Shown piece by piece: positions 23,147 to 55,355 of a stretch of DNA of 64,000 nt. This stretch comes from Macrostomum hystrix (Eukaryota; Animalia; Platyhelminthes). The stretch covers positions 62,001 to 126,000 of the forward strand of contig CATNEN010000018.1 in NCBI GenBank assembly GCA_950097015.1, read 5' to 3'. The position numbers and the translations under genes were made by a program. The notes beneath the pieces are model-generated. The model saw only the letters and a program-made list of their open reading frames with translations, searched no databases and was not told the origin of the DNA. Numbering within the stretch: the first letter of the stretch is position 1; every line of letters begins with the position of its first letter.

Positions 23147-23291
23147 CTCAGCAGCCAATGAGACTCCTGCAGCTATGAACGATTCTGGTTGGCTGCTGCG
23201 GACTGCAAAAGCATGGTCTTAAACCAAACTCTGAGCTGCCCTTCTCGACCTCATTTACCACTTTCCCAAACCACAAGCAGACACCTGCAAA

Positions 23292-26021: not shown

Positions 26022-26371
26022 AGCCGCACCCAGCGACGCAGAGCTGAGCCAGCAGCTGCACTCCAAGCTCTCTCAGTCGGGATTCGTGGACTCCAGAGCC
26101 GCCTTGCAGATCGCTGTGGCTGACGTCTTGCAGGATGTCCTCAGGAAGAGATTGAACTATGACGACTGTTTCGCTGTGGGCAGCTTCTCTGAGGCCTGGG
26201 GCAACAGCCTGGTCTCTCTGGATGGCAGAACTGACATCGACTCTGACATCGATGTTATTGAGCTGATTCCAGGAAGGCCGATTCACCCGAGAGATGTGTG
26301 CGAGTGCGACCGAGTGGAGGCTGCTCAGACAGTGGAGCTCAGCAATGGCCACATCCTGAGCTCCGGATTCG
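26022..26371 (+). CDS. Exon 2 of copy 1: cGAS/Mab-21-like NTase N-lobe with GS and DxD motifs
   Basis: [37 protein letters not shown]...[12 protein letters not shown]...DSDIDV. Confidence 0.85.
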
Positions 26372-30968: not shown

Positions 30969-30971
30969 CGG

Positions 30972-31265
30972 CCGATGGAGACAGAGAGAATGGCAGATGG
31001 AGACAGAGAGAATGGCAGATGGAGACAGAGAGAATGGCAGATGGAGACAGAGAGAATGGCAGATGGAGACAGAGAGAATGGCAGATGGAGACAGAGAGAA
31101 TGGCAGATGGAGACAGAGAATGGCAGATGGAGACAGAGAGAATGGCAGATGGAGACAGAATGGCAGATGGAGACAGAGAGAATGGCAGATGGAGACAGAG
31201 AATGGCAGATGGAGACAGAATGGCAGATGGAGACAGAGAGAATGGCAGATGCAGACAGAGAATGG
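30972..31265. repeat. 20-22-bp GA-rich repeat (GGAGACAGAGAGAATGGCAGAT)n
   Basis: Directly visible; paralogue at 56220-56575. Confidence 0.95.
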
Positions 31266-31986
31266 GAGGGCACAGCAGCAGCTGAGCACAATGCCAGTTA
31301 ATTAAGGAGGCCGCGGTTGCGGCAAAAGCCAGTTCAAACTGCAGGGCCAAGCTGAGCTGCCGTACTCACATCCATCCCTCCCTCCGCCCTCCGCTCTGAG
31401 CAGGACTCGCGATTTCTGTACAATCCGCAGCCTCTCCTGATGGCCCCTCCGAGCACCGAGGCGAAGGCAAAGGCATCTCGGGCCCGCCTTCTCCGACACA
31501 ATGGGCCTGTGGGACTCACCCACCTCCCTCCGCTCCGATGAGGCTGAACCGCAGTCTCTCCGCTTCTGTCCTCTCCTCTCCTCTTTATTCCCTGCTGTGA
31601 GTGCTCGACTTTAAGGGCTGGAGGGGGTCACCGCCCGATGTGAAGCAGGCCAGATTCTGCTCAGCATCGAGTTGAGCACGGTACTGTCTGAACACAATTA
31701 TCCAGAGAGGCTGTAACTAAGGGGCAGCCACCCCACTCCCAGACAGAGGCATTGTGCTGAGGGGTTTATCTGAGCACAGTGAGCCTTCACAGCTTCACAA
31801 ACTGCGGCCTTAGCAGTAGACAGGCAGGCTGAGATGGGTTGAGAAGAATGGATGAGCCGCTGCTGAGTTCATGATTTTATGAGTTTGAGAACAGTCGGAG
31901 ACTGCCTGCCTGCCTGTGCCAAAGCTTGTTAAGTGCTGTAGAATGCTGTGTGTGCTGATGATGAGGGGAACAATCTTCAATAAATT

Positions 31987-32290
31987 TTACAACCCCGAAT
32001 CCACAACCCTGAATCCACAACCCTGACTCCACAACCCTGAATCCACAACCCTGAATCCACAACCCTGAATCCACAACCCTGACTCCACAACCCTGAATCC
32101 ACAACCCTGAATCCACAACCCTGAATCCACAACCCTGAATCCACAACCCTGAATCCACAGCCCTGAATCCACAACCCTAAATCCACGGCCCTGAATCCAC
32201 AGCCCTGAATCCACAGCCCTGAATACAGAACCCTGAATCCACAACCCTGAATCCACAACCCTGAATCCACAACCCTGAATACAGAACCTA
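31987..32290. repeat. 14-bp repeat (CCACAACCCTGAAT)n
   Basis: Directly visible; paralogue at 57296-57735. Confidence 0.95.
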
Positions 32291-33751
32291 AATGAACATA
32301 CAAAACATAGAAATTAAAATCTTTTATTTTAATCCCTTATCCCAGATCCCGAATCCTGAAGTCTGAATACTCAACAGCTTTCTTATTCCTTACCAAATAT
32401 GCTCAAATGCTCAACCATTCAACTGAAGCCTGTTCCTGAATCAAAAAAGATCCCAAACCTCGTGACCCATCTCGAATGGGATTTGTTTAACAGGTTTATT
32501 CGCAGATTTATCAGAAAATTGCTTTCAGCAGCTGTTATCACCTGACCAAATAGCACTGGCTTATTTGCAATGTATTTTATGTCTATGGCTAAACCTATCT
32601 AAGCAGTGTGATTTTCTCTTCACTGTCCGTCCATGCTTCAGCTCATGCGGCTGCTTAAATGTTAATTAAACTGGCTGCTAACATTTGAGCAGTGTTGCTT
32701 TTTTTATTTCAAGCAGTCTTTTCAGAAGTTGCTGATCTTTACAAGGCCAATGATTTTAGTTTTGTTTTGTCATTGGCACAGCAGCTGCTATTGTTCAGTG
32801 AGCACCGCTACACTTGTCTCAAAGGGCAATTCTGAGCACACTGTGAGCAGTCTCAGCTGCAGCCACCCCAGCCTCCTCAGATGCGGTTCAGGAGAGCCTT
32901 TGAAAAAGCATTCTCAAGCAGACAATGAGTTGAGCACAGCTTAAATATATTCAGTTGTTAATGTATCAAGTTGTTAATAAAATATATAATTATATCAATT
33001 TGAATACTGTTGTTATCTAATTTAAATGCCATATTCACCATGAGGCTCAAGTATGCTCAAGTATGCTCAAGTATGCTCAAGTATGCTCACTTCTTAACAA
33101 TGTTACAGTAAGAATTTGCTTTGTATTTTTTATTTGAATTCAAACGATTAACTTTGATATGGTGAATTTATCTTGCATGCTTTCATTCTACGCTTGTAAT
33201 ATGTAAGTCTGCTGTTTCTGTGTGAGTATTCTCATCCAGCAGGGTGGGCTGCAGTTTTGTTGTTGTGCATAAGTGGCAGGTTGGCATGCAAGACAAGCTC
33301 ATAGACTGCAGGTTTGGGTGAGCATTGCTTGCGTTAGATCGCTTTGGACAGACTGGAGTCTATTCTCAATCCAGCCTCTTCCTTCCCCTACTCTCGTCTC
33401 CGCGCAGTCCATTCCAGTCCCCGTGTTGGTCTCGGTTGCCAAGGGCCGCATATCGACCTCCTCCCTCCAGCAGGTTTGAGCAGTTTTGCACTCGGCCTGG
33501 AGCTCTCAGCGTGGCCCGCCTGACTGGCGCCATTTGGCTGCGTTTTTACCTGCGGGAGGGTCTCATTGCTGTGCTGGGTTGGCGCCCAGATACTGAGTGT
33601 GCTCAAGTTAATTACAGCCTCAATTTCTGCTCACAGCTGGTTAATTTTTCTGTCTCTCTTCAGCTACTGTTTTGAGCTCCTTTTTGAGGCCTGACTCAAC
33701 ATTCTCTCTGCTGTGCTGATGCTTTAGGATTGCAAAATTGAATTCTGGGAT

Positions 33752-35862
33752 GTGAGGGGAGAAACAGACAGAGGTGAGGGGAGAAACAGACAGAGGTGAG
33801 GGGAGAAACAGACAGAGGTGAGGGGAGAAACAGACAGAGATGAGGGGAGAAACAGACAGAGGTGAGGGGAGAAACAGACAGAGGTGAGGGGAGAAACAGA
33901 CAGAGGTGAGGGGAGAAACAGACAGAGGTGAGGGGGAGAAACAGACAGAGGTGAGGGGGAGAAACAGACAGAGATAAGGGGAGAAACAGACAGAGGTGAG
34001 GGGAGAAACAGACAGAGGTGAGGGGAGAAACAGACAGAGGTGAGGGGAGAAACAGACAGATGTGAGGGGAGAAACAGACAGAGATGAGGGGAGAAACAGA
34101 CAGAGATGAGGGGAGAAACAGACAGAGGTGAGGGGAGAAACAGACAGAGGTGAGGGGAGAAACAGACAGAGGTGAGGGGAGAAACAGACAGAGGTGAGGG
34201 GAGAAACAGACAGAGATGAGGGGAGAAACAGACAGAGATAAGGGGAGAAACAGACAGAGGTGATGGGAGAAACAGACAGAGATGAGGGGAGAAACAGACA
34301 GAGATGAGGGGAGAAACAGACAGAGGTGAGGAGGAGAAACAGACAGAGGTGAGGGGGAGAAACAGACAGACGTGATGGGGAGAAACAGACAGAGGTGAGG
34401 GGGAGAAACAGACAGACGTGAGGGGGGAGAAACAGACAGAGGTGAGGGGGAGAAACAGACAGAGGTGAGGGGGAGAAACAGACAGACGTGAGGGGGGAGA
34501 AACAGACAGAGGTGAGGGGGAGAAACAGACAGAGGCGAGGGGGAGAAACAGACAGACGTGAGGGGGGAGAAACAGACAGAGGTGAGGGGGAGAAACAGAC
34601 AGAGGTGAGGGGGAGAAACAGACAGAGGTGAGGGGGAGAAACAGAGAGAGGTGAGGGGAGAAACAGACAGAGGTGAGGGAAGAAACAGACAGACGTGATG
34701 GGGAGAAACAGACAGAGGTGAGGGGGAGAAACAGACAGACGTGAGGGGGGAGAAACAGACAGAGGTGAGGGGGAGAAACAGACAGAGGTGAGGGGGAGAA
34801 ACAGACAGACGTGAGGGGGGAGAAACAGACAGAGGTGAGGGGGAGAAACAGACAGAGGTGAGGGGGAGAAACAGACAGACGTGAGGGGGGAGAAACAGAC
34901 AGAGGTGAGGGGGAGAAACAGACAGAGGTGAGGGGGAGAAACAGACAGAGGTGAGGGGGAGAAACAGAGAGAGGTGAGGGGAGAAACAGACAGGTGAGGG
35001 AAGAAACAGACAGAGGTGAGGGGGAGAAACAGACAGAGGTGAGGGGAGAAACAGACAGAGGTGAGGGGAGAAACAGACAGAGGTGAGGGGGAGAAACAGA
35101 CAGAGGTGAGGGGAGAAACAGACAGAGGTGAGGGGAGAAACAGACAGAGATGAGGGGAGAAACAGACAGAGATAAGGGGAGAAACAGACAGAGGTGATGG
35201 GAGAAACAGACAGAGATGAGGGGAGAAACAGACAGAGAAGAGGGGAGAAACAGACAGAGGTGAGGAGGAGAAACAGACAGAGGTGAGGGGGAGAAACAGA
35301 CAGACGTGATGGGGAGAAACAGACAGAGGTGAGGGGGAGAAACAGACAGACGTGAGGGGGGAGAAACAGACAGAGGTGAGGGGGAGAAACAGACAGAGGT
35401 GAGGGGAGAAACAGACAGAGGTGAGGGGGAGAAACAGACAGAGGTGAGGGGAGAAACAGACAGAGGTGAGGGGAGAAACAGACAGAGGTGAGGGGGGAGA
35501 AACAGACAGAGGTGAGGGGGGAGAAACAGACAGAGGACAGACAGATATGAGGGGGAGAAACAGACAAAGGTGAGGGGGGAGAAACAGACAGAGGACAGAC
35601 AGATATGAGGGGGAGAAACAGACAGAGGTGAGGGGAGAAACAGACAGAGGTGAGGGGGAGAAACAGACAGACGTGAGGGGGGAGAAACAGACAGAGGTGA
35701 GGGGGAGAAACAGACAGATATGAGGGGGAGAAACAGACGGAGGTGAGGGGAGAAACAGACAGAGGTGAGGGGGAGAAACAGACAGATATGAGGGGGAGAA
35801 ACAGACAGAGGTGAGGGGAGAAATAGACAGAGGTGAGGGGGAGAAACAGACAGACGTGAGGA
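33752..35862. repeat. 22-25-bp purine-rich minisatellite (GTGAGGGG(G)AGAAACAGACAGAG)n, 2.1 kb
   Basis: Directly visible, variable G-run; paralogue at 59198-61805. Confidence 0.96.
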
Positions 35863-36794
35863 CAGAAGCAGACAGAAAGCAGTGAGCAAAAAGGCGGGGA
35901 AAAGGTGAGAAAAAGCCATTAGTTTTGTTTGAGCACTCGATATTTTTTTGACTTGCAGCCTCAGAAATTATGGGGGGGGCAGGTCACCACCAAAAAGCAG
36001 ACTGGATTCTGCTCACATCGAGTTGAGCATGGCCCTGTCTGAGCACAATTAATCAGAGAGGCTGTAACTAATGGGTCAGCCACCCCACTCCCATCCAGAG
36101 GCATTGTGCTGAGGGTTTTCCGAGCACAATGAGCAGTCACAGCTTCTGAAACTGCGGCCTGGGCAAGAGACACTAACTGAGTTGGTCTGAGAATAAGTTA
36201 TGTATTTTATGAGTTTGAGAACATTCAAAGCTATTGTTTAGAGAGCCGCCGCTTCCTACCAGAGACCCTGTGCTCAAGGGGCTTCTGAGCACACTCAGTG
36301 CATTCTGTGGCATAGAAGCCGTGTTGCAAGCCGAGAAAAAGCGGCAGAATTTTATTAGCAGACACCGAGTTGAGCACAATTGAGTCACTGAACTCACTGA
36401 ATTAAAGGGCCTTAGCAACACAATGAAGCTGAGACAGAGCTAAACTGGCTGCTCATTGTATGGGGTGCACTGGCTCTGAGCATGGTCCGCAGTTTCTGTA
36501 CAATTCGCAGCCTCTCCTGACGGCCCTCCCCGCTCGGAGGCGAAGGCGCTGAGCCCGTGGCAGCAGCGGCCGCTCGCACGCTGCCTCGCAGACTCCAGCT
36601 CGGGCCTGCCTTCTTCGACACAATGGGCCTGTGCGACTCACCCACCTCCCTCCGCTGTGATGAGGCTGCAGCTGCAGCCGTTCACAGACTCCACTCCTCT
36701 GCTCTCTATTCTCTGCTTTGACTGCTCGATTTGAGAATGGTCTCACATTGGATAAGCTGTGCAGGTGCATTTCCACCACAACTTCAGATTGATA

Positions 36795-37140
36795 GATGAG
36801 GGGAGAAACAGACAGAGGTGAGGGGAGAAACAGACAGAGATGGGAGGAGAAACAGACAGAGGTGAGGGGAGAAACAGACAGATGTGAGGGGGAGAAACAG
36901 ACAGACGTGAGGGTGGAGAAACAGACAGAGATGAGGGGAGAAACAGACAGAAATGAGGGGAGAAACAGACAGAGGTGAGGGAGAAACAGACAGAGATGAG
37001 GGGAGAAACAGACAGAAATGAGGTGAGAAACAGACAGAGATGAGGGGAGAAACAGACAGAGATGAGGGGAGAAACAGACAGAAATGAGTGGAGCAACAGA
37101 CAGAGGTGAGGGAGAAACAGACAGAGATGAGGGGAGAAAA
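36795..37140. repeat. Second block of the GAAACAGACAGAG minisatellite
   Basis: Same unit as 33752-35862; paralogue at 62726-63070. Confidence 0.94.
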
Positions 37141-37702
37141 GAAAAGCATGCAGAGGAGAATCTTAGAAAAGACTCAATTGTGTTGTTGCCAGGCCAATAG
37201 AAATTTCTGTGCTCACTAAAAGTTTTCTTTTGCTCTCGCAGCCTCAGAAAATTTCAGTTTCACAGCACAATTATTCGGAGGCTATATGATCACTTCACTT
37301 CCATGAGGCTATATGGAAAAATTTGATCACTTTGAGTACAGTTGGTGAGTGCCTGCCTGCCCCCAGTCCGCTGCGCTTCTAATTAGGGTCTGGTGACCCC
37401 CAGTCCATGGACTGAACAGCTGACAGCAGACTTTGGAAGTCGCTGGCTGCACATGTAGCCCATCTAGACTGGGTGTCTTCTCCATCTGCTCAAATCAGGA
37501 TGCCAAAAAACTGTCTAAACCTCGCGGCAGTTGATGAAAAGTTAGTGAACTGAGTCAGCTTCACTTCACTGTGTCTCAAATTTGATCCCAAATCCCGTTT
37601 CTGAACGGCAAACAAAAGCCGGCTAATCCGGAAACTCCGATAGCTGAACAGCTAACAGATTCCGAATCAGAACTCGATCTTACAGCTGGGCGAGAAACCG
37701 AG

Positions 37703-38228
37703 TCCTGAACCCACAGTCCTGAACCCACAGTCCTGAACCCACAGTCCTGAACCCACAGTCCTGAACCCACAGTCCTGAAACCACAGTCTTGAAACCACAG
37801 TCCTGAACCCACAGTCCTGAACCCACAGTCCTGAACCCACTGTCCTGAACCCACAGTCCTGAACCCACAGTCCTGAACCCACAGACCTGAACCCACAGTC
37901 CTGAACCCACAGTCCTGAACCCACAATCCTGAACCCACAGTCCTGAAACCACAGTCTTGAAACCACAGTCCTGAACCCACAGTCCTGAACCCACAGTCCT
38001 GAACCCACAGTCCTGAACCCACTGTCCTGAACCCACAGTCCTGAACCCACAGTCCTGAACCCACAGACCTGAACCCACAGTCCTGAACCCACAGTCCTGA
38101 ACCCACAGTCCTGAACCCACAGTCCTGAAACCACAGTCCTGAACCCACAGTCCTGAACCCACAGTCCTGAACCCACAGTCCTGAAACCACAGTCCTGAAC
38201 CCACAGTCCTGAACCCACAGTCCTGAAC
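37703..38228. repeat. 14-bp repeat (CCTGAACCCACAGT)n
   Basis: Directly visible; paralogue at 63633-63962. Confidence 0.95.
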
Positions 38229-40055: not shown

Positions 40056-40983
40056 GCGAATTTCAAAACCTAACTCAAAGCCCCAACCAAAACATTTCAA
40101 CTGCTCTCCTAACAGCTCCATTTCAACCAGTGAAGCAGTGCAAACTCATTCACCATGGCAACCATCTCACACTGAGTGCATCATATTTCTGGGATCGTGA
40201 GAGCTCTCAATCAGGCTTAGGATCTGTGCTCAAAGTGCCAGAGGAGTCAGAGCTGCTGCTGCGAAAATGTGTATTAAACTGGCTTCTAACAAGAAAGCAT
40301 TTGGGCTATTCTCGCGCTCTGACCATAAAAAATGTTTAACGAACGCGCCCTAGCTACCAGAGACTCTGTGCTCAAAGGACATATGAGCACACTGTGAGCA
40401 GTCGCGGCATCCCACCCCAGCCTTCCCTGATGCGGTGCACTCGAGTGTCTGAGCAGGCTGAGCAGTGCTCTCCGCATATCAGGCAGGGAGAGGCTGTGTT
40501 GCTGCCCGATGAAAAGCTGCAGTCTGCTTCTTTAGCAGGCAGCGAGTTGAGCACAGTTTGTTACCTGAGCACAGTGGCAAAACATCAGGCTGCATACGGT
40601 AATGAGTCGCTAACAAAACTCAGTGAATTGAAGGCATTCGGCAGCACAACGAGCGGTCAGAGATATAGAAATAAAATATGTGCTCATCTATTCTCAATGC
40701 AGCCTCTGCCTTCCCCTACTCTCGTCTCCGGGCAGTCCATTCCAGTCCCCGTGTTGGCCTCGGTTGCCAAGTGCCGACCTCCTCCCTCCAGCAGGTTTGA
40801 GCAGTTTTGCACTCGGTCTTAAGCTCTCTTCTGTTTTAAGCTGCTTTTAATGGCTCGACTTAACTTTTTTTATGCTTTTGAGATCAGTTTGATTGCTTGT
40901 AGACAGGTCCAGGTTGTAGCATGAGATCAGATTATATAGTACACCTTGGTACCAGAGCTTATGATATGGCAAAGTCTGTTTAG

Positions 40984-41863
40984 TCCCTCCTCTTCCCTCC
41001 TCTTCCCTCCTCTCCTCTCCTCTCCTCTCCTCTCCTCTCCTCTCCTCTCCTCTCCTCTCCTCTCCTCTTCCCTCCTCTCCTCTCTTCTGCTCCTCTCCTC
41101 TCCTCCTCTTCTCCTCTCCTCTTCTCCTCTTCTCTTCTCTCCTCTCCTTTTCTCCTCTCCTCCTCTTCTTTCCTCGCCTCCTCTTCTCTCCTCTCCTCTT
41201 CTCTTCTCCTCTCATCTGCTCTTCCCTCCTCTTCTTCTCTCCTCTCCTCTCCTTTTCCCCCTTCTCCTCGCCTCTTCCCTCCTCTTCCCTCCTCTCCTCT
41301 CCTCTTCCCTTTTCTCCTCTTCTCCTCTCCTCTCCTCTTCCCTCCTCTCATCTCCTCTTCCCTCCTCTTCCCTCCTCTCCTCTCCTCTTCCCTCCTCTCC
41401 TCTCTTCTCCTCCTCTCCTCCTCTTCTTCTCTACTCTTCTCCTCTCCTTTTCTCCTCTCCTCTCCTTTACTCCTCTCCTCCTCTCCTCTCCTCCTCTCCT
41501 CTCCTCTTCCCTCCTCTCCTCTCTTCTCCTCCTCTCCTCTCCTCCTCTTCTCCTCTCCTCTCCTCTCCTTTTCTCCTCTCCTCCTCTTCTCTCCTCTCCT
41601 CTCCTTTTCTCCTCTCTTCTCCTCTCCTCTCCTCCTCTTCTTCTCTCCTCCTCTCCTCTCCTCTTCTGTCCTCTCCTCTCCTTTTCTCCTCTCTTCTCCT
41701 CTCCTCTCCTCCTCTTCTTCTCTCCTCTTCTCCTCTCCTCTTCTCTCACCTCCCCCCTCTCCTCTCTTCTCCTCCTCTTCCCTACTCTCCTCTCTTCTCC
41801 TCCTATTCCCTCCTCTCCTCTCCTATTCTCTCCTCTTCCCTCCTCTCCTTTCTTCTCCTGCAG
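40984..41863 (+). repeat. 0.9-kb (CCTCT/CTT)n polypyrimidine tract ending at a probable 3' splice site (CTGCAG|CTCAAC)
   Basis: Positional paralogue of 20451-23146, upstream of ANK-cGLR copy 2. Confidence 0.94.
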
Positions 41864-41995
41864 CTCAACAGCCAATAAGCCTCCAGTAAACAAGGCTTCT
41901 GGCTGGCTGCAACGGAATGCAAAGGCAAAGTGTCTGGCTACTAAACTTTCTACCACATTTGCCACTTTCCTAACCCACAAGCAGACACCTGCAAA

Positions 41996-44900
41996 ATGTT
42001 TCCCTTACTCACAATACTCACGGCTGTCCTCGTGTACCTCATGAACTCACTTCATTCCTCACACCACCGAGAAGACGCACAAGAACTCACCGACCAGGAC
42101 CTCCTCGCAGCCATCAGAGACGACCGAGTGGAGCCCGTTCAGCGATTCATTAACAGCGGCGGGAGCCTCGATACCTTCATCGCCTATGCAGACTCATTTT
42201 TTACTCCAGCAATGCTCGCTTGCCGATTCGGAAGACATGAAATTCTCGTGAGACTCATCCGAGCCATTGCAGATGTAGATAAGCAGAACTGGAGAGGGAC
42301 GACAGCATTGTGGATGGCATCACAATATGGTCACCACCGACTGGTGAAATCACTCATCAAAGCACGAGCCGACGTCAATCTTCAAAGAAATACTGGCTCC
42401 TCACCTCTCTACATTGCATCACAAAATGGCCATAAGGACGTCGTCCACTCACTCATCAAAGCACGAGCCGACGTCAATCTTCAAGAGAAAGTCTATGGCC
42501 GCTCACCTCTCTACATTGCAACACAATATGGCCACAAGGACGTCGTCGACTCACTCATCAAAGCACGAGCCGACGTCAATCTTCAAGAGAAAGTCTATGG
42601 CCGCTCACCTATCTACATTGCATCACAATATGGCCATAAGGAGGTCGTCCACTCACTCATCAAAGCACGAGCCGACGTCAATCTTCAAACAAATACTGGC
42701 GAGTCACCTCTCTACATTGCATCACAGCAAGGCCATAAGGACGTCGTCAACTCACTCATCAAAGCACGAGCCGACGTCAATCTTCAAAGAAATACTGGCT
42801 TCTCACCTCTCAACATTGCATCACAATATGGCCATAAGGACGTCATCGACTCACTCATCAAAGCACGAGCCGACGTCAATCTTCAAATAAATACTGGCGC
42901 CTCACCTCTCTACATTGCATCACAAAATGGCCATAAGGACGTCGTCCACTCACTCATCAAAGCACGAGCCGACGTCAATCTTCAAGAGAAAGTCTATGGC
43001 TCCTCACCTCTCCACATTGCATCACAAAATGGCCATAAGGACGTCGTCCACTCACTCATCAAAGCACGAGCCGACGTCAATCTTCAAGAGAAAGTCTATG
43101 GCTCCTCACCTCTCTACATTGCATCACAAAATGGCCATAAGGACGTCGTCCACTCACTCATCAAAGCACGAGCCGACGTCAATATTCAAGAGAAAGTCTA
43201 TGGCTCCTCACCTCTCTACATTGCATCACAAAATGGCCATAAGGACGTCGTCCACTCACTCATCAAAGCACGAGCCGACGTCAATATTCAAACAAATACT
43301 GGCTACTCACCTCTCTACATTGCATCACAAAATGGCCACCTCAGTGTTGTTGAGTCACTCATGAAGGTCGTTGATAGCCCAGAATTGCTGGAAGCTGCTC
43401 TGCGAATCGCCACGGAAGTTGGCCATGACCCAGTGGTTGACCTGCTGAGCCCTGGATCATCCGCGCCTCTGCCTGAGAAGCAGAACAGGTAGGAGCTCCT
43501 GTTTCTCCTGTAAAAGTCACATGAGCAATGAGATAATTTGAGACTTCGGATTCTCTGAGTAATCAGACTCGAAATCTGATAGCTGAAGTTCGGAACTGAT
43601 TGTGTGTCAGTTATTGTACATATAAAATATGATTTTGGAGAATTCACAGGTTTGGGATTTAATAATACAGGTTTGGGATTCAATATTACAGGTTTGGGAT
43701 TTAATGTTACAGGTTTGAGATTAAATGTTACAGGTTTGAGATTTAATATTACAGGTTTGAGGTTTAATATTACAGGTTTGAGATTTAATATTACAGGTTT
43801 GAGGTTTAATATTACAGGTTTGAGATTTAATATTACAGGTTTGAGATTTAATATTACAGGTTTGAGATTTAATATTACAGGTTTGAGATTTAATATTACA
43901 GGTTTGGGATTTAATATAACAGGTTTGGAATTCAATATTACAGGTTTGAGATTCAATACTACAGGTTTGAGATTTATATTACAGGTTTGAGATTTAATAT
44001 TACAGGTTTGAGATTTAATATTCTAGGTTTGAGATTTAATATTTCAGGATTGAGATTTAATATTACAGGTTTGGGATTTAATATTACAGGTTTGAGATTT
44101 AATGTTACAGGTTTGAGATTTAATGTTACAGGTTTCGAATTCAATATTACAGGTTTGAGATTCAGTATTACAGAAATAAAATATTGGATTTAGATTTCTT
44201 GAAATTGGCACATTCTGTCTGTTTAGTGTATTATTCGCAAAAAATCTGCCTACTAATTTTTTCAAAAGTGATACATCTTTCACATTCCTCGTTTCAACTA
44301 TAGTTTTAGTTTCAATCCCAGTGAAACTCAGCACTGCCGCCTCCTCTCACCCTTCAGAGCCTCCCAGCCTCACTGAACCTCAGCACTGCCGCCTCCTCTC
44401 ACCCTTCAGAGCCTCCCAGCCTCACTAAACCTCAGCACTGCCGCCTCCTCTCACCCTTCAGAGCCTCCCAGCCTCACTGAAACTCAGCACTGCCGCCTCC
44501 TCTCACCCTTCAGAGCCTCCCAGCCTCACTGAACCTCAGCACTGCCGCCTCCTCTCACCCTTCAGAGCCGCACCCAGCGACGCAGAGCTGAGCCAGCAGC
44601 TGCACTCCAAGCTCTCTCAGTCGGGATTCGTGGACTCCAGAGCCGCCTTGCAGATCGCTGTGGCTGACGTCTTGCAGGATGTTCTCACGAAGAGATGGAA
44701 CAATGACGACTGGTTCGCTGTGGGCAGCTTCTCTGAGGCCTGGGGCAACAGCCTGGTCTCTCTGGATGGCAGAACTGACATTGACTCTGACATCGATGTT
44801 ATTCGGCTGATTCCAGGAAGGCCGATTCACCCGAGAGATTTGTGCGAGTGCGACCGAGTGGAGGCTGCTCAGACAGTGGAGCTCAGCAATGGCCACATCC

Positions 44901-47700
44901 TGAGCTCCGGATTCGGTGAGAATTTCCTGTCAGAGACTGTCGGGATGGCTGGGACAAGAATTGAACATGAGTTTGGCTTGCTCATCTTCTTTGGCTTTCT
45001 AAAGCAAACAACAAACAAGGAAAGCAAACAAATGTTCAGTCCAGGTTTGAAATGCAGAGCCAGAGCAAGAAATTTCCCAGCAAAAATGTAAACCCTGATT
45101 TTTCTTTCGGCGAGCTTCCTCTGGGAACCAAACAGAGGCTTAGCGCTCCTCGCTCAGTGTACTTAGTGAATAGTGATGCTATATTATGTATTCATTGTAC
45201 ATACTGATTTTTATAAGCCAAAATCTAATATCCTATATTCGCTATAAACTGTTAGTTAACTAGCAATGTAAGCCCATCTTCGGGGAGCCCAGACGATTCA
45301 ATCAAGTTTCTCTTTGTTTCTTAGGCTCGCAATACTTCCACAGTCACAGGTGTGTAAAATTACAGTTTTTGAGGTGACCGCCCCAGTCCATGGACTGAAC
45401 CGTTGTACACAGCTTTTGGAAGCGTCGTACAAACGCTACGGCTGGGCCATTGCAAATTTCGGTTATTTCTATTATATTATATTCTATTGCCGCTTTTACA
45501 GAATTCGTTTTCTGTGATTCTGAAATTATGCCAATCAATGTCCATTGATTTTCAACAATATTCCGATCAGCCGATTCTAACTAGCCATATAGTAGCTAGT
45601 TATCCAGTAGACAGGAAAATTATCCTAATTTATGTGGGCGGGAAAACCACCGCCGCAGGAAAATCCCATCGAATTTCCAGTCCAGATTTGAATCTCGGCC
45701 TGAGGGAACGATGCTTGTCCAAGAGCTAGAATCATAACCTCGTATTTATTCAGCTCAGCCAGCTGAAGGTTACAGTAGAAATTTGAGGGGGCTGGTGACT
45801 CCCCAGTACAAGGACTGAAGAGCTGTATACAGTACTCACAAAATACTCATAAGAAACTGAAGAAGCAAGGAAGAATTGAAAATAATCGTGCACGTGCTCC
45901 CCTCCGTAGGGGGCAAAAGTTTCTAGTCTGCACTAAAATTTCATATAAATCGCAGCTACAAACCGTCTTTGCACAATTTTTTTATATTATCGAGAAATAG
46001 TTCTGTGTCTATTAACTTGAAATCTGATGGCATTTTGCATATTTCTTGCATTTCCTATTTCTCCAGCTTCCAACCCAGCCGACACTCAACGAGGCTCCGC
46101 CCTGAGACCGTCTGTGGACGAAGTCACCGCCCGCCGCCTCTGCCGCTACCCTCCCATCGCGCCGCTGCAGCCACCAAGAGTCTCCAACTCCAACATCCCC
46201 CAGTCCGTGCTGCAGTCGCTCAAGCGAGACCTCACCGCTGACTCATCGCCCTGTCACGTGGTGCACGCAGCCCCTCCCGGAATGGGGGGCCAGCAGCTCC
46301 GAGTGAGCAGCAGCTTCCTGGAGAGGCGACTGCTGCGGAGTCTCAGCACTCTGCAAGGCCAGCTGTTCGTCACACTCAAGTGGCTGCTGAAGAAGAAAAT
46401 CTCAAACGTCGGCTTCAAGTCCTATCACGCAAAGACCGTCACGTTCCGAATGCTGGAGGAGACACCTGCTGAGCAGTGGAAGCCGGAGAATCTCGTGAGA
46501 CTCACGACACGCTCGCTGCAGATTTTGCTTGACGGTGTGGAGAGCGGCTGCAGATCAGACACACCTGACGGTCGGATCCTGGAGCACTTCTTCCTGAGCG
46601 ATGCCGCTGTGTACCTGAAGGGCTTGAAGTCGCCCACATCAGCTGAGAGAGTGAGCGAAGCGTTGAATCGGGCAGCCGGCGCATTGAGTGACGCCATGGC
46701 TGAGCTGCCTCAGCTGCTGCTGCAGTTCGAGGACAGTCTGCGACCCGTCACCGACTCGGGCCGATTCCACTTCCACCCGTTCCTCATCCTGCCAGTTCTT
46801 TGGCTCACACCTGTACCAGAAGCCAAGACATGCGAGTTCCACGAGATCTACGACATCGTGAGAGAGTCGGTGCTTCGTCTGTCCGATGGAGACCGCAGCC
46901 CGCAGTCCCGAGAGAGTCTCGCAGAGCTGATCAACAAACTGCCAGACTGCGCCCGATCAGCGCGAGAGTCTCTCAGAGCGCTGGCCTGCCTGAAGTTCGG
47001 CGACAGACGCACTGCTGAAAAAGTTGTGAGCGACTGCGGGCCGTTCAGTGCGAGCAGAGGCATCGATTGGGGAGATGAGAGGTCGGCGAGAGAGGCCACT
47101 GCGGACTTTGTGTGGCAGCACCTGAGGAGCCGAGACTCCGCCTGGAAATTCTGCTTGGAGTTTGATGAGCGACCGAAGCTGCCGATTCAGCACAAAGTCT
47201 TTGCCGACTGCTTTCCGCTGCAGATGATAAACTACAGCACATACTTCTACCTGAACTTTGACGCTCTGCTGCGGGCTCTTTGCAATGAGCTGACAGTAGC
47301 AGGAGACCGGAGCGATCAGGACTGGATCCGGGATGTGGCTCAGAGGGAGGATGCGGATGAGCAGGAGCTGCTGGTGGCTGCGGCGATCTGCGGAGATCTG
47401 GAGCTGCTGCGGCGGCTGCGCAGAAGAATCACTCACGAGCTGTGCCAGCTGCCAGGGTGGCTGCAGCAGAAGATTGAGAGGCTGAGCAGTCAAGGTGAAG
47501 ATCGCCAAGACCAAGGTGAAGATCGCCAAGACCAAGGTGAAGATCGCCAAGACCAAGGTGAAGATCGCCAAGACCAAGGTGAACATCGCCAAGACCAAGG
47601 TGAAGATCGCCAAAACCAAGAGATTCAAGAGAGATTGATATTGAGATTGAGATCAGCACAGGCAAAAAGGCTGCAGAGAAAGCGAAAATCGGTCGAGTAA
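41996..47700 (+). CDS. Ankyrin-repeat / cGAS-like receptor (Mab-21 NTase) fusion, copy 2, intact: join(41996..43488, 44566..44915, 46067..47700), 1158 aa
   Basis: Exons 1493+350+1634 = 3477 nt, one open frame. Donors AG|GTAGGA and G|GTGAGA; acceptors CCCTTCAG|A and TTCTCCAG|C; phases 2/2 and 1/1 match. Domains: 9 internal ANK repeats + terminal repeat; GSFSEAWGN; DSDID; [14 protein letters not shown] (probable third acidic residue, D.V....C..P strand); SYHAKT Mab-21 motif. Confidence 0.85.
43645..44172. repeat. 21-bp intronic repeat (TTACAGGTTTGAGATTTAATA)n
   Basis: Directly visible; only 1-2 relic units at the matching place in copy 1 (~25470-25503). Confidence 0.94.
44322..44565 (+). repeat. 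52-bp splice-acceptor-containing tandem repeat (5 acceptor copies)
   Basis: Same unit as 25505-26021. Confidence 0.92.
47491..47616 (+). repeat. 21-bp coding repeat, (QGEDRQD)x6, in the C-terminal tail of copy 2
   Basis: CAAGGTGAAGATCGCCAAGAC at 47491, 47512, 47533, 47554, 47575, 47596. Confidence 0.93.
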
Positions 47701-47821: not shown

Positions 47822-50800
47822 AGGCTGAGATGTCAAACTAAAACTTCAGGCCTGTGACAATCGAACATCAGGCCAGTGACTGTCGAACTTCAGGCTCGTG
47901 CTTTGCGAGTGAGTCGTACCTCCTCAGGCCAGTGACTATCGAACATCAGGCAAGTGACTATCGAACTTCAGGCCAGTGACTATCGAACTTCAGGCCAGTG
48001 ACTATCGAACTTCAGGCCAGTGACTATTGAACTGAAGGCCAGTGACTATCAAACTTCAGGCCAGTGACCATCGAACTTCAGGCCAGTGACTATCGAACAT
48101 CAGGCAAGTGACTATCGAACTTCAGGCCAGTGACTATCGAACTTCAGGCCAGTGACTATCGAACTTCAGGCCAGTGACTGTCGAACTTCAGGCCAGTGAC
48201 CATCGAACTTTAGGCAAATGCTTTATGAGTGAGTTCTACCTCCTCAGGCCAGTGACTGTCGTACTTCAGGCTCGTGCTTTGTGAGTGAGTCCGACCTCCT
48301 CAGGCCAGTGACAATCGAACTTCAGGCTAGTGACTATCAAACTTCAGGCCAGTGACCATCGAACTTCAGGCCAGTGACTATTGAACTTCAGGCCAGTGAC
48401 TATCAAACTTCAGGCTCGTGCTTGGTGAGTGAGTTCTACCTCCTCAGGCCAGTGACTGTCGTACTTCAGGCCAGTGACCATCAAACTTCAGGTCAGTTAC
48501 TATCCAACTTCAGGCTCGTGCTTTGTGAGTGAGTCCTACCTCCTCAGGCCAGTGACAATCGAACTTGAGGCTAGTGACTATCGAACTTCAGGCCAGTGAC
48601 TATCGAACTTCAGGCCAGTGACCATCAAACTTCAGGCCAGTGACTATCGAACTTCAGGCCAGTGACCATCAAACTTCAGGCCAGTGACTATTGAACTGAA
48701 GGCCAGTGACTATCAAACTTCAGGCCAGTGACCATCGAACTTCAGGCCAGTGACTATCGAACTTCAGGCCAGTGACTTTCGAACTTCAGGCCAGTGACCA
48801 TCAAACTTCAGGCCAGTGACCATCGAACTTTAGGCACATGCTTTATGAGTGAGTCCGACCTCCTCAGGCCAGTGACAATCGAACTTCAGGCTAGTGACTA
48901 TCAAACTTCAGGCCAGTGACCATCGAACTTCAGGCTAGTGACTATCAAACTTCAGGCCAGTGACTATTGAACTTCAGGCCAGTGACCATCAAACTTCAGG
49001 TCAGTTACTATCCAACTTCAGGCTCGTGCTTTGTGAGTGAGTCCTACCTCCTCAGGCCAGTGACAATCGAACTTGAGGCTAGTGACTATCGAACTTCAGG
49101 CCAGTGACTATCGAACTTCAGGCCAGTGACCATCAAACTTCAGGCCAGTGACTATCGAACTTCAGGCCAGTGACCATCAAACTTCAGGCCAGTGACTATT
49201 GAACTGAAGGCCAGTGACTATCAAACTTCAGGCCAGTGACCATCGAACTTCAGGCCAGTGACTATCGAACTTCAGGCCAGTGACTTTCGAACTTCAGGCC
49301 AGTGACCATCAAACTTCAGGCCAGTGACCATCGAACTTTAGGCACATGCTTTATGAGTGAGTCCGACCTCCTCAGGCCAGTGACAATCGAACTTCAGGCT
49401 AGTGACTATCAAACTTCAGGCCAGTGACCATCGAACTTCAGGCTAGTGACTATCAAACTTCAGGCCAGTGACTATTGAACTTCAGGCCAGTGACCATCAA
49501 ACTTCAGGTCAGTTACTATCCAACTTCAGGCTCGTGCTTTGTGAGTGAGTCCTACCTCCTCAGGCCAGTGACAATCGAACTTGAGGCTAGTGACTATCGA
49601 ACTTCAGGCCAGTGACTATCGAACTTCAGGCCAGTGACCATCAAACTTCAGGCCAGTGACTATCGAACTTCAGGCCAGTGACCATCAAACTTCAGGCCAG
49701 TGACTATTGAACTGAAGACCAGTGACTATCAAACTTCAGGCCAGTGACCATCGAACTTCAGGCCAGTGACTATCGAACTTCAGGCAAGTGACTATCGAAC
49801 TTCAGGCCAGTGACTATCGAACTTCAGGCTCGTGCTTTTGAGTGAGTCGCACCTCCTCAGGCCAGTGACCATCGAACTTCAGGCTCGTGCTTTTGAGTGA
49901 GTCGCACCTCCTCAGGCCAGTGACCTTCGAACTTCAGGCCAGTGACTATCGAACTTCAGGCCAGTGACTATCGAACTTCAGGCCAGTGACTATCGAACTT
50001 CAGGCCAGTGACCATCGAACTTTAGGCACATGCTTTATGAGTGAGTCCGACCTCCTCAGGCCAGTGACAATCGAACTTCAGGCTAGTGACTATCAAACTT
50101 CAGGCCAGTGACCATCGAACTTCAGGCTAGTGACTATTGAACTTTAGGCCAGTGACTATTGAACTTCAGGTCAGTTACAATTGAACTTCAGGCCAGTGAC
50201 CATCAAACTTCAGGTCAGTTACTATCCAACTTCAGGCTCGTGCTTTGTGAGTGAGTCCTACCTCCTCAGGCCAGTGACAATCGAACTTGAGGCTAGTGAC
50301 TATCGAACTTCAGGCCAGTGACTATCGAACTTCAGGCCAGTGACTATCGAACTTCAGGCCAGTGACCATCAAACTTCAGGCCAGTGACTATCGAACTTCA
50401 GGCCAGTGACCATCAAACTTCAGGCCAGTGACTATTGAACTGAAGGCCAGTGACTATCAAACTTCAGGCCAGTGACCATCGAACTTCAGGCCAGTGACTA
50501 TCGAACTTCAGGCAAGTGACTATCGAACTTCAGGCCAGTGACTATCGAACTTCAGCCTCGTGCTTTTGAGTGAGTCGCACCTCCTCAGGCCAGTGACCAT
50601 CGAACTTCAGGCTCGTGCTTTTGAGTGAGTCGCACCTCCTCAGGCCAGTGACCTTCGAACTTCAGGCCAGTGACTATCGAACTTCAGGCCAGTGACTATC
50701 GAACTTCAGGCCAGTGACTATCGAACTTCAGGCCAGTGACTATCAAACTTCAGGCCAGTGACTATCGAACTTCAGGCCAGTGACTATCGAACTTCAGGCA

Positions 50801-53800
50801 AGTGACTATCGAACTTCAGGCCAGTGACTATCGAACGTCAGGCCAGTGACTATCGAACTTCAGGCCAGTGACCATCAAACTTCAGGCCAGTTACCATCCA
50901 ACTTTAGGCTCGTGCTTGGTGAGTGAGTCCTGCATCCTCAAGCCAGTGACCATCGAACTTCAGGCTCGTGCTTTATGAGTGAGTCGCAATTCCTCAGGCC
51001 AGTGACCTTCGAACTTCAGGCCAGTGACCATCGAACTTCAGGCCAGTGACTGTCGTACTTCAGGCTCGTGCTTTGTGAGTGAGTCGCACCTGCTCAGGCC
51101 AGTGACCATCGAACTTCAGGCCAGTGACTGTCGAACTTCAGGCCAGTGACTGTCGAACTTCAGGTCAGTTACTATCCAACTTCAGGCTCGTGCTTTGTGA
51201 GTGAGTCCTACCTCCTCAGGCCAGTGACAATCGAACTTGAGGCTAGTGACTATCGAACTTCAGGCCAGTGACTATCGAACTTCAGGCCAGTGACTATCGA
51301 ACTTCAGGCCAGTGACCATCAAACTTCAGGCCAGTGACTATCGAACTTCAGGCCAGTGACCATCAAACTTCAGGCCAGTGACTATTGAACTGAAGGCCAG
51401 TGACTATCAAACTTCAGGCCAGTGACCATCGAACTTCAGGCCAGTGACTATCGAACTTCAGGCAAGTGACTATCGAACTTCAGGCAAGTGACTATCGAAC
51501 TTCAGGCCAGTGACTATCGAACTTCAGCCTCGTGCTTTTGAGTGAGTCGCACCTCCTCAGGCCAGTGACCATCGAACTTCAGGCTCGTGCTTTTGAGTGA
51601 GTCGCACCTCCTCAGGCCAGTGACCTTCGAACTTCAGGCCAGTGACTATCGAACTTCAGGCCAGTGACTATCGAACTTCAGGCCAGTGACTATCGAACTT
51701 CAGGCCAGTGACTATCAAACTTCAGGCCAGTGACTATCGAACTTCAGGCCAGTGACTATCGAACTTCAGGCAAGTGACTATCGAACTTCAGGCCAGTGAC
51801 TATCGAACTTCAGGCCAGTGACTATCGAACTTCAGGCCAGTGACCATCAAACTTCAGGCCAGTTACCATCCAACTTTAGGCTCGTGCTTGGTGAGTGAGT
51901 CCTGCATCCTCAAGCCAGTGACCATCGAACTTCAGGCTCGTGCTTTATGAGTGAGTCGCAATTCCTCAGGCCAGTGACCTTCGAACTTCAGGCCAGTGAC
52001 CATCGAACTTCAGGCCAGTGACTGTCGTACTTCAGGCTCGTGCTTTGTGAGTGAGTCGCACCTGCTCAGGCCAGTGACCATCGAACTTCAGGCCAGTGAC
52101 TGTCGAACTTCAGGCCAGTGACTGTCGAACTTCAGGCCAGTGACCATCGAACTTCAGGCCAGTGACTGTCGTACTTCAGGCTCGTGCTTTGTGAGTGAGT
52201 CGCACCTGCTCAGGCCAGTGACCATCGAACTTCAGGCCAGTGACTATCGAACTTCAGGCCAGTGACTATCGAACTTCAGGCCAGTGACCATCAAACTTCA
52301 GGTCAGTTACTATCCAACTTTAGGCTCGTGCTTTGTGAGTGAGTCCTACCTCCTCAGGCCAGTGACAATCGAACTTCAGGCTAGTGACTATCAAACTTCA
52401 GGCCAGTGAATATCGAACTTCAGGCTAGTGACTATTAAACTTCAGGCCAGTGACCATCGAACTTTAGGCCAGTGACCATCAAACTTCAGGCCAGTTACCA
52501 TCCAACTTTAGGCACGTGCTTTGTGAGTGAGTCCTACCTCCTCAGGCCAGTGACTGTCGTACTTCAGGCTCGTGCTTTGTGAGTGAGTCCGACCTCCTCA
52601 GGCCAGTGACCTTCGAACTTCAGGCCAGTGACTATCGAACTTCAGGCCAGTGACTGTCGAACTTCAGGCCAGTGACCATCAAACTTCAGGCCAGTTGCCA
52701 TCCAACTTTAGGCTCGTGCTTGGTGAGTGAATCCGACCTCCTCATGCCAGTGACCATCGAACTTCAGGCTCGTGCTTTTGAGTGAGTCGCACCTCCTCAG
52801 GCCAGTGACCTTCGAACTTCAGGCCAGTGACTATCGAACTTCAGGCCAGTGACTATCGAACTTCAGGCAAGTGACTATCGAAGTTCAGGCCAGTGACTAT
52901 CGAACTTCAGGCCAGTGACTATCGAACTTCAGGCCAGTGACTATTGAACTGAAGGCCAGTGACTATCAAACTTCAGGCCAGTGACCATCGAACTTCAGGC
53001 TCGTGCTTTTGAGTGAGTCGCACCTCCTCAGGCCAGTGACTATCGAACTTCAGGCCAGTGACTATCGAACTTCAGGCCAGTGACTATCGAACTTCAGGCC
53101 AGTGACTGTCGAACTTCAGGCCAGTGACCATCGAACTTTAGGCACATGCTTTATGAGTGAGTTCTACCTCCTCAGGCCAGTGACTGTCGTACTTCAGGCT
53201 CGTGCTTTGTGAGTGAGTCCGACCTCCTCAGGCCAGTGACAATCGAACTTGAGGCTAGTGACTATCGAACTTCAGGCCAGTGACTATCGAACTTCAGGCC
53301 AGTGACTATCGAACTTCAGGCCAGTGGCCATCAAACTTCAGGTCAGTTACTATCCAACTTCAGGCTCGTGCTTTGTGAGTGAGTCCTACCTCCTCAGGCC
53401 AGTGACAATCGAACTTGAGGCTAGTGACTATCGAACTTCAGGCCAGTGACTATCGAACTTCAGGCCAGTGACCATCGAACTTCAGGCCAGTGACCATCAA
53501 ACTTCAGGCCAGTGACTATCGAACTTCAGGCCAGTGACCATCAAACTTCAGGCCAGTGACTATTGAACTGAAGACCAGTGACTATCAAACTTCAGGCCAG
53601 TGACCATCGAACTTCAGGCCAGTGACTATCGAACTTCAGGCAAGTGACTATCGAACTTCAGGCCAGTGACTATCGAACTTCAGGCTCGTGCTTTTGAGTG
53701 AGTCGCACCTCCTCAGGCCAGTGACCATCGAACTTCAGGCTCGTGCTTTTGAGTGAGTCGCACCTCCTCAGGCCAGTGACCTTCGAACTTCAGGCCAGTG

Positions 53801-55355
53801 ACTATCGAACTTCAGGCCAGTGACTATCGAACTTCAGGCCAGTGACTATCGAACTTCAGGCCAGTGACCATCGAACTTTAGGCACATGCTTTATGAGTGA
53901 GTCCGACCTCCTCAGGCCAGTGACAATCGAACTTCAGGCTAGTGACTATCAAACTTCAGGCCAGTGACCATCGAACTTCAGGCTAGTGACTATTGAACTT
54001 CAGGCCAGTGACTATTGAACTTCAGGTCAGTTACTATTGAACTTCAGGCCAGTGACCATCAAACTTCAGGTCAGTTACTATCCAACTTCAGGCTCGTGCT
54101 TTGTGAGTGAGTCCTACCTCCTCAGGCCAGTGACAATCGAACTTGAGGCTAGTGACTATCGAACTTCAGGCCAGTGACTATCGAACTTCAGGCCAGTGAC
54201 TATCGAACTTCAGGCCAGTGACCATCAAACTTCAGGCCAGTGACTATCGAACTTCAGGCCAGTGACCGTCAAACTTCAGGCCAGTGACTATTGAACTGAA
54301 GGCCAGTGACTATCAAACTTCAGGCCAGTGACCATCGAACCTCAGGCCAGTCACTATCGAACTTCAGGCAAGTGACCATCGAACTTCAGGCCAGTGACTA
54401 TCGAACTTCAGCCTCGTGCTTTTGAGTGAGTCGCACCTCCTCAGGCCAGTGACTATCGAACTTCAGGCCAGTGACTATCGAACTTCAGCCTCGTGCTTTT
54501 GAGTGAGTCGCACCTCCTCAGGCCAGTGACCTTCGAACTTCAGGCCAGTGACTATCGAACTTCAGGCCAGTGACTATCGAACTTCAGGCCAGTGACTATC
54601 GAACTTCAGGCCAGTGACTATCAAACTTCAGGCCAGTGACTATCGAACTTCAGGCCAGTGACTATCGAACTTCAGGCAAGTGACTATCGAACTTCAGGCC
54701 AGTGACTATCGAACTTCAGGCCAGTGACTATCGAACTTCAGGCCAGTGACCATCAAACTTCAGGCCAGTTACCATCCAACTTTAGGCTCGTGCTTGGTGA
54801 GTGAGTCCTGCATCCTCAGGCCAGTGACCATCGAACTTCAGGCTCGTGCTTTATGAGTGAGTCGCAATTCCTCAGGCCAGTGACCTTCGAACTTCAGGCC
54901 AGTGACCATCGAACTTCAGGCCAGTGACTGTCGTACTTCAGGCTCGTGCTTTGTGAGTGAGTCGCACCTGCTCAGGCCAGTGACCATCGAACTTCAGGCC
55001 AGTGACTGTCGAACTTCAGGCCAGTGACTGTCGAACTTCAGGCCAGTGACCATCGAACTTCAGGCCAGTGACCATCGAACTTCAGGCTCGTGCTTTTGAG
55101 TGAGTCGCACCTCCTCAGGCCAGTGACCATCGAACTTCAGGCCAGTGACTATCGAACTTCAGGCCAATGACTATCGAACTTCAGGCTCGTGCTTTTTGAG
55201 TGAGTCCTACCTCCTCAGGCCAGTGACTGTCGTACTTCAGGCCAGTGACCATCGAACTTCAGGCCAGTGACCATCGAACTTCAGGCCAGACCCTATTGAA
55301 CTGAAGGCCAGTGACTATCAAACTTCAGGCCAGTGACCATCGAACTTCAGGCAAA
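47822..55355 (+). repeat. 22-bp satellite with ~34-bp insert and higher-order repeats, 7.5 kb
   Basis: Same family as 28962-30968; marker GGTCAGTTACTATCC recurs at 48491, 48999, 49507 (508-bp period). Confidence 0.96.

Follow-up and report, generated by a model that had tools for sequence, protein, structure and literature searches.

A spliced, transcribed ankyrin-repeat gene with a predicted cGAS-like nucleotidyltransferase domain in a Macrostomum-type flatworm

Do the three open reading frames (ORFs) that lie at 41996-47700 in a 64,000-nucleotide stretch of Macrostomum hystrix DNA (contig CATNEN010000018.1 of assembly GCA_950097015.1, positions 62,001 to 126,000; the window in what follows) belong to one gene, and if they do, what would its protein be for? 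Among the pattern-recognition receptors of animals, the cGAS-like receptors (cGLRs) form a major family, and flatworms are usually described as being without cGAS-STING. To our knowledge, most cGLRs have no known ligand, and those fused to ankyrin (ANK) repeats have never been characterised biochemically. The locus, which we call copy B to tell it from a tandem paralogue (copy A) at 23292-28970, proves to be a transcribed gene of three exons in a Macrostomum-type flatworm. It belongs to a large Macrostomum family of ANK-cGLR genes that duplicates in tandem, and the structural model of a close homologue supports the view that the ankyrin array encoded in its first exon is fused to a nucleotidyltransferase (NTase) domain of the cGAS/cGLR fold.

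The first-pass annotation of this DNA, made from the letters alone, had proposed that the three ORFs are spliced into a single frame of 1158 amino acids, and the splice sites, phases and transcripts bear this out. Read directly from the sequence, exons 41996-43488, 44566-44915 and 46067-47700 (on the + strand, as are all the gene features located below) are separated by two GT..AG introns with matching phases, and the joined coding sequence of 3477 nt holds 1158 codons closed by a single terminal stop at 47698-47700. With the cut marked by a slash, exon 1 ends at 43488 as ...CAGAACAG/GTAGGA in phase 2, exon 2 begins at 44566 behind the acceptor ...CCCTTCAG/AGCC and ends at 44915 with the donor ...GGATTCG/GTGAGA in phase 1, and exon 3 begins at 46067 (...TCTCCAG/CTTCC); the codons rebuilt across the two junctions are AGA (Arg) and GCT (Ala). 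Exon 1, delimited by its ORF, the donor CAG/GTAGGA and its Pfam matches, carries the start codon, a hydrophobic N-terminus, the ankyrin array and a C-terminal cap, and its start is homologous to that of the Macrostomum lignano protein P0001. Exon 2, placed by its splice sites, collinearity with P0001 and profile alignment with hhalign, encodes the spine helix, the first strand, the GS loop and the first two catalytic Asp residues. Exon 3, recognised with Pfam and phmmer, encodes the remaining NTase core, the Mab-21_C helical lobe, a C-terminal extension, a short repeat and a basic tail. P0001 is collinear with the spliced product over both junctions.

Intron 1 (43489-44565; RNA depth, the exon 1-exon 2 joint and Tandem Repeats Finder, TRF) contains a 21-bp minisatellite at 43646-44173 and a 52-bp tandem array at 44322-44569 (4.8 copies; TRF and alignment with copy A) in which every unit repeats the acceptor CCCTTCAG/AGCC. 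Within this array the open frame runs from the last unit only, and an upstream unit read in phase 2 gives AG/A GCC TCC CAG CCT CAC TGA. Use of the upstream acceptors as the main form was rejected, as an in-frame TGA follows from each of them and the listed joints all fall at the last acceptor. Some contigs at a depth of 10-14x (against 66-123x in the exon) reach into the last 52-bp unit or units with three variant letters; they could stem from unspliced RNA, from a paralogue or from an upstream acceptor being used now and then. The corresponding acceptor array before exon 2 of copy A has about 10 units (25500-26025). At the other end of the intron a TAG stop at 43490-43492 overlaps the donor, so that retention of intron 1 would yield an ANK-only protein ending in ...EKQNR.

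Logan contigs from four public sequencing runs were placed on 41996-47700; three of these runs, X7, X8 and X11, come from one organism and two studies. Their depth is in the tens to hundreds over the exons and zero over most of both introns, so that the contigs behave as cDNA whatever the label of the run. For intron 1 the RNA depth is zero at 43524-44287 and at most 0.87 over 44288-44478, and the joint 43485->44563, which equals 43488/44566 within a 3-nt ambiguity (GT..AG), was found in X7, X8 and X11. Intron 2 (44916-46066) has zero depth over 45434-46006; here a 757-nt X11 contig links 44915 to exon 3, with the first exon-3 bases in a 26-nt divergent version, and a loose end in X7 at 46066 carries the final bases of exon 2, CTGAGCTCCGGATTC. 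Both junctions that the first-pass annotation had singled out for verification in RNA (43488/44566 and 44915/46067) were in this way recovered, the first in three runs and the second through the X11 contig and the X7 loose end. Since both joints are carried by contigs, the ANK and NTase exons sit on one mRNA, and the outcome that would have undone the proposed fusion, namely ANK and NTase exons on separate mRNAs, is contradicted by the exon 1-exon 2 joint in all three runs. Two of the X8 contigs are identical to copy B over stretches peculiar to it (43388-43488 and 47584-47700), and the exact match of the first ceases right at the donor. A segment of intron 2 at 45243-45433 reaches an RNA depth of 176x and is bounded by a loose end at either side; it resembles a short repeat or small element whose transcripts stem from other loci.

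Copy B is an ankyrin protein in the sense of bearing tandem 33-aa ANK repeats. About 12 repeats of 33-34 aa, near-identical except at a few positions, lie at 42179-43406 as judged from Pfam, the tandem period, the repeat alignment and the per-column entropy; the Pfam matches of exon 1 are Ank_2 (E 4.3e-173, 11-12 stretches) and Ank (E 2e-93, 12 stretches), and the coding DNA has a tandem period of 102 bp (9.8 copies, 92% matches). The repeats differ from one another at the beta-turn, at the residue after SPL, at two positions of the first helix and at one position of the second. The beta-turn and first-helix positions are the usual ligand-binding face of ankyrins and of designed ankyrin repeat proteins (DARPins). 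The ANK part is basic, with an isoelectric point (pI) of 8.9. Ahead of it, residues 2-16 (41999-42043) form the most hydrophobic segment of the protein (Kyte-Doolittle 15-residue maximum of 2.27 at residue 2); no basic residues precede this segment, which is similar in P0035 and P0001, absent from other homologues, and possibly a membrane anchor or signal-like segment.

In regards to the NTase domain, a comparison in hhalign of the family alignment (A4) with an alignment of 36 Pfam-type Mab-21 proteins (A7) gave a probability of 99.9% and an E-value of 2e-35 over columns 10-329, and the distant tail of an exhaustive search with the family consists of proteins above the Pfam Mab-21 and Mab-21_C thresholds. 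Against the PDB, an NTase-only family profile found cGAS-like receptor 1 (8gjy, E 1e-6), mouse cGAS (E 4e-6) and also Mab21L1, the matches of an alignment still holding the ANK regions were dominated by ankyrins and DARPins, and the NTase core alone (A5) found nothing in the PDB, so that motif equivalence was taken from hhalign against the profile of Pfam-positive Mab-21 proteins. The fold was predicted with AlphaFold2 (AF2) for the homologue segment P0001:271-871 (601 aa, 68% identical), from a 52-row alignment that included the two NTase pieces of the window, with a predicted local distance difference test (pLDDT) of 93.5 and a predicted template-modelling score (pTM) of 0.92. When this model was searched against the PDB with Foldseek, the top matches were all cGAS (E 8e-8), and VIA-align gave Z 19.4 to human cGAS over 269 residues (model 7-332 versus cGAS 162-521), Z 19.1 to MB21D2 and Z 18.5 to oyster Cv-cGLR1; the top structural matches in Swiss-Prot were Sp-cGLR2, Cv-cGLR2, Sp-cGLR1 and cGAS. 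Structural homology to the cGAS catalytic domain is thus found through a 68%-identical homologue, and the structure prediction that the first-pass annotation had called for, made here on that homologue, did recover the cGAS/cGLR fold. An OAS-like or poly(A)-polymerase-like identity was rejected, as the top structural matches are all cGAS, cGLR or Mab21 proteins.

The motifs that had been read from the letters, GS, DxD, a third Asp and SYHxKT, are all present in copy B (GSFSE at residue 551, DSDID at 571, SVDEV at 630 and SYHAKT at 733), and hhalign matches each of them to Mab-21 proteins, pairing GS with GS, SDID with SDxD, RPAxDxVxA..C D with HGPA...DxVxA..C D, LRVS..FLE with WRIS.SLQE and YHAKT with YHCKT. 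G551-S552 (44723-44728; codons ggc agc, family columns and hhalign) would form the G[S/G] activation loop; the G is kept in 50/51 and the S in 49/51 aligned rows of the family, and the pair follows strand 49-52 of the model (strand 1). D573-I574-D575 (44789-44797; codons gac atc gat, hhalign) is the predicted [DE]h[DE] metal-binding pair (D in 45/49 and 45/50 aligned rows) and opens strand 2, the model strand 75-89 beginning there. D632 in RPSVDEV (46117-46119; codon gac, hhalign) is the candidate third catalytic Asp, which is D in 41/49 aligned rows and lies in the middle of model strand 132-141. The SYHAKT motif of the C-terminal lobe (46420-46437), with Y in 48/51 and K in 51/51 aligned rows, aligns to SSYHCKT of Mab-21 and SYHVKT of cGAS. 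In the model, the GS pair and the three Asp residues occupy the places that the NTase fold demands. Over the 52 family sequences the catalytic and motif residues are kept in 84-100% of aligned rows, and copy B has all of them. The final rule of Li et al. 2023 for a cGLR combines structural homology to cGAS with G[S/G] and [E/D]h[E/D] X50-90 [E/D], and copy B, as far as its sequence can tell, conforms to it, with D573-I-D575, 56 residues and D632. It does not fall into the non-catalytic Mab21L1/2 class (a Mab21 fold without a functional triad), given that its triad is present and conserved. Between the NTase strands, at 44840-44900 (residues ~590-610), there is in addition a conserved H-x5-C-x-C-x(11-14)-G-H insertion (C in 49/49 and H in 41/47 aligned rows of A4), which may be a zinc site placed elsewhere than the zinc thumb of cGAS.

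How isolated is such a gene? A word-index search returned 30 relatives, of which the named ones are all from M. lignano, many of them annotated with ANK and Mab-21_C, the best being 68% identical; an exhaustive search of representative proteins returned 145 at E<=1e-3, 54 of them at <1e-30. At E<1e-30 the family therefore comprises at least 54 clusters at 50% identity, and the close and middling representatives that were looked up are all from M. lignano. The M. lignano locus L001 (GCA_002269645.1, contig NIVC01001685.1) aligns to the window in coding regions only, at 70-80%, and the M. lignano protein P0032 has long exon blocks that match exons 1 and 3, with a gap at the place of exon 2. At 10001-13742 and 17434-23512 of L001 there are tandem genes with ANK Pfam matches whose 3' parts match the NTase exon of copy B. 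About 3,000 cGLRs have been catalogued, some with ankyrin or tetratricopeptide repeat (TPR) modules, and "most platyhelminthes" are described as having no cGLRs beyond Mab21-like proteins (Li et al. 2023, PMC9980059). Five M. lignano members of the present family were cloned in that study (PAA86972.1, PAA45980.1, PAA57558.1, PAA93208.1 and PAA68676.1; samples 89-93), as constructs that begin at the NTase domain (PMC9980059). The suspicion voiced in the first-pass annotation that ANK-Mab21 fusions might already be annotated was therefore right, both for M. lignano gene models and for the ANK-cGLR fusions of Li et al. 2023. The fusion, the gene family and the cGLR assignment are already in the literature, and with the fusions published and relatives screened, the novelty implied in the annotation was overstated. 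What is new here is this particular gene with its transcript-verified structure, the mapping of its residues, its frameshifted neighbour and the description of its C-terminal domain.

The M. lignano ANK/Mab-21 proteins (PAA65091.1, which is P0032, P0001 and the five cloned cGLRs) belong to the same family as copy B, at 35-68% identity over the NTase. They share with it the order of parts (ANK array, NTase, C-terminal extension) and the motifs VGSF.EGWGNSL...SDIDV, RPA.D.V.A, LRVS..FLE and YHAKT, and the M. lignano locus, like the window, shows comparable exon blocks and tandem gene pairs. However, the best identity is only 68-72%, so that copy B is either another paralogue or from another Macrostomum species; the number of repeats and their variable positions also differ, and copy B has an extra GEDRQDQ repeat as well as the hydrophobic N-terminus that is absent from many members. 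Further away, Sp-cGLR2 of Stylophora pistillata and Cv-cGLR2 of Crassostrea virginica align over almost the whole 601-aa model, the C-terminal extension included (Foldseek E 5e-9 and 1e-8, respectively; TM 0.47/0.45, as template-modelling scores, for Cv-cGLR2). Their sequence identity is only 13-14%, and activity has been demonstrated for those two whereas here it is predicted from sequence. Sp-cGLR2, which answers an unidentified ligand by making 2'3'-cGAMP, has a ligand surface that is acidic (Li et al. 2023, PMC9980059), a pattern that the acidic NTase domain of copy B fits. Vertebrate cGAS shares the bilobed Mab21 NTase fold, the GS loop, the acidic triad and the SYHxKT helix with the family, but at ~18-20% identity; its domain is basic where that of copy B is acidic, and it has neither the N-terminal ANK array nor the 260-aa C-terminal domain. 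ANK-cGLR fusions elsewhere (e.g. in S. pistillata; Li et al. 2023 Fig 1C/4C) combine the same cGLR core with the same ankyrin concept, and their ankyrin repeats have been proposed to mediate protein or ligand interactions (PMC9980059).

Catalysis, a product, a ligand, gating by the ANK array and a role in immunity are what we infer for copy B, and on balance we lean, by no great measure, towards a ligand-gated cGLR with a non-nucleic-acid trigger, the ANK array being its likeliest sensor and a cyclic nucleotide its product. The enzyme would be inactive at rest. A non-nucleic-acid ligand, probably a protein or other macromolecule, would bind the variable ankyrin face, the back face of the NTase or both, and reposition the GS activation loop, after which the active site would condense nucleoside triphosphates to a cyclic di- or oligonucleotide, to be read by a downstream receptor. 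The sensor-like reading comes from the variation among repeats at the beta-turn and first helix, the fast divergence of the ANK exon, the size of the family and the acidity of the NTase domain (pI 6.4); the variable array lies directly upstream of the spine helix, and a basic surface is what has been associated with nucleic-acid-sensing cGLRs (Li et al. 2023, PMC9980059).

A number of results weigh against a ligand-gated cGLR. The five cloned M. lignano relatives, in a screen with double-stranded DNA and poly I:C, carry no 'active' note in Table S3, unlike the active enzymes (PMC9980059), and no family member is known to be active. Schistosoma is reported to have lost cGAS and STING, which were not detected in Schmidtea either, and flatworms have no known STING or other receptor (PMC4117786, PMC13563047). 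The literature is silent about Macrostomum, and in the window a scan of the large ORFs, which was not exhaustive and included no dedicated search for STING, gave no STING-like ORF. In the active site, the spacer from GS to DxD is 20 residues long, which is the upper limit of the cGLR motif (about 11 residues in cGAS), and the third motif reads V-D-E, outside the stricter h[DE]h pattern that homologues show (V-D-F). The Pfam search envisaged in the first-pass annotation upheld the ankyrin half (E 4.3e-173) and did not uphold the other: exon 2 has no Pfam match, Mab-21 included, and exon 3 matches Mab-21_C at 17.9 bits (E 0.0034), under the cut-off of 24.1, so that the gathering thresholds of Mab-21 (PF03281) and Mab-21_C (PF20266) are not reached. 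Homology to Mab-21 is shown, despite these sub-threshold scores, by the phmmer matches to Pfam-positive Mab-21 proteins and by the hhalign E-value of 2e-35. The fold, moreover, was modelled on the 68%-identical homologue and not on the spliced protein of the window. The hydrophobic N-terminus could put the protein in a compartment unfit for a cytosolic-sensor model. The ratio of nonsynonymous to synonymous substitution rates (dN/dS) between copies A and B is about 1 in exons 2-3, with exon identity not above intron identity, which is compatible with relaxed constraint. Finally, the dominant transcript contigs agree with copy A at certain sites and with neither window copy at others, and since they differ from both copies at several sites, their source is a further close paralogue or allele.

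Next in order stands an account that we think unlikely, in which copy B is an active cGLR whose ligand binds at the back face of the NTase or at the C-terminal domain, while the ANK array serves in localisation, oligomerisation or recruitment of partners. The NTase back face is indeed the ligand surface in all characterised cGLRs (Li et al. 2023 discussion, PMC9980059). The near-identical repeats within the gene suggest a scaffold under concerted evolution more than a site shaped for binding, the 601-aa model (pTM 0.92) shows the conserved C-terminal domain in tight contact with the NTase, and some family models have no ANK repeats (e.g. P0009 and P0014). However, the few repeat positions that do vary, at the beta-turn and first helix, are the canonical ankyrin/DARPin ligand face, divergence between the tandem copies is much faster in the ANK exon than elsewhere in the gene, and the models without ANK repeats may owe this to truncated prediction.

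Somewhat more doubtful again is the possibility that the NTase is a non-catalytic scaffold of the Mab21L1 or MiD51 kind, maybe nucleotide-binding and making no messenger, within a membrane-tethered adaptor. MiD49/51 carry an N-terminal anchor, which the hydrophobic N-terminus of copy B resembles, and models of Mab21L1/2 are among the structural matches; the want of a family member with demonstrated activity and of a cognate receptor in the phylum would also suit a scaffold. On the other hand, conservation of the GS loop and triad at about 85-98% across 52 divergent paralogues is unexpected without catalysis, the best structural matches are the active enzymes cGAS, Sp-cGLR2 and Cv-cGLR2, and Li et al. 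2023 (PMC9980059) describe Mab21L1-3 as proteins for which no functional active site is predicted.

The comparison of the two tandem copies bears on a last alternative. The first-pass annotation had reported the same exon structure in the paralogue at 23292-28970, and for the layout this holds (exons 23292-24967, 26022-26371 and 27524-28970, from the alignment with copy B), but the NTase frame of copy A, as assembled, is broken. One base is missing after 27560 (CCCT-AGACC versus CCCTGAGACC), and with this deletion the frame is lost 12 codons into exon 3, ahead of the third catalytic Asp, and runs to a stop at 27760-27762; copy A either is a recent pseudogene or carries an assembly error. The stretches 25775-28949 and 44319-47493, which hold exon 2, intron 2 and exon 3, are 97.6% identical, whereas the ANK exons are 84-90% identical. 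That copy B is itself a decaying duplicate like copy A, with transcripts and function belonging to other paralogues, we regard as very unlikely: the dN/dS of about 1, the frameshift in copy A, the dominant contigs that differ from both copies and a satellite-rich region with a long interspersed nuclear element (LINE) would favour it, but copy B keeps an uninterrupted 1158-codon frame with every catalytic motif, the 33 amino acid differences between the copies are almost all at family-variable positions (two fall in conserved columns, one per copy), and the X8 contigs match copy B exactly in both stretches named above.

The tandem genes invite a broader and more tentative idea, improbable as it stands, in which the ANK-cGLRs are a diversifying repertoire whose variable DARPin-like ankyrin surfaces directly recognise pathogen proteins or other non-nucleic-acid ligands, turn on the making of a second messenger and signal via a receptor other than canonical STING, possibly through the C-terminal domain. 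Were this true, there would be second-messenger sensing in a phylum otherwise reported to be without cGAS-STING. By itself copy B adds one member to an already catalogued family. Macrostomum is an experimentally tractable flatworm that carries dozens of ANK-cGLR genes, and the transcript-supported model, in which the catalytic residues are mapped, provides a concrete construct for asking what a non-nucleic-acid cGLR ligand is and by what the signal is read. It is accompanied by a naturally frameshifted paralogue, and its ANK array differs from copy to copy.

The C-terminal extension of copy B (46726-47490, ~255-260 aa) is predicted to be helical with a small sheet (AF2 pLDDT 86.4) and appears to be specific to the family. 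It has no Pfam match, Foldseek found none in the PDB (best E 0.35), and a shape search of the ESM Atlas gave no convincing match; TPR- or pentatricopeptide repeat (PPR)-like helical look-alikes with TM <0.4 were its sole matches in the PDB and Atlas. In AFDB it matched family members and, beyond these, weakly, the C-terminal parts of bivalve Mab-21_C proteins. It is followed at 47491-47620 by a 21-nt coding repeat (GEDRQDQ, ~6 copies; TRF and translations) that is absent from copy A, and the low pLDDT at 274-286 is associated with this repeat.

Outside the two genes, the flanks 30970-38034 and 56286-63965 are 96-99% identical, which puts the duplicated unit at ~19-26 kb. A 22-bp satellite lies directly downstream of both copies, at 47841-55352 for copy B (7.5 kb) and at 28955-30968 for copy A (2 kb). 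Just upstream of copy A, at 17570-20112 on the + strand, there is a retrotransposon of the non-long-terminal-repeat type, with an Exo_endo_phos endonuclease ORF followed by an RVT_1 reverse transcriptase ORF. Each of the two genes is preceded by a long low-complexity tract rich in CT/GA (20363-23222 and 40847-41980), and these tracts give rise on either strand to spurious ORFs as long as 931 aa. A further tandem array of ~3.9 kb, at 9286-13213, has a period of ~55 bp and units that are 96-97% identical.

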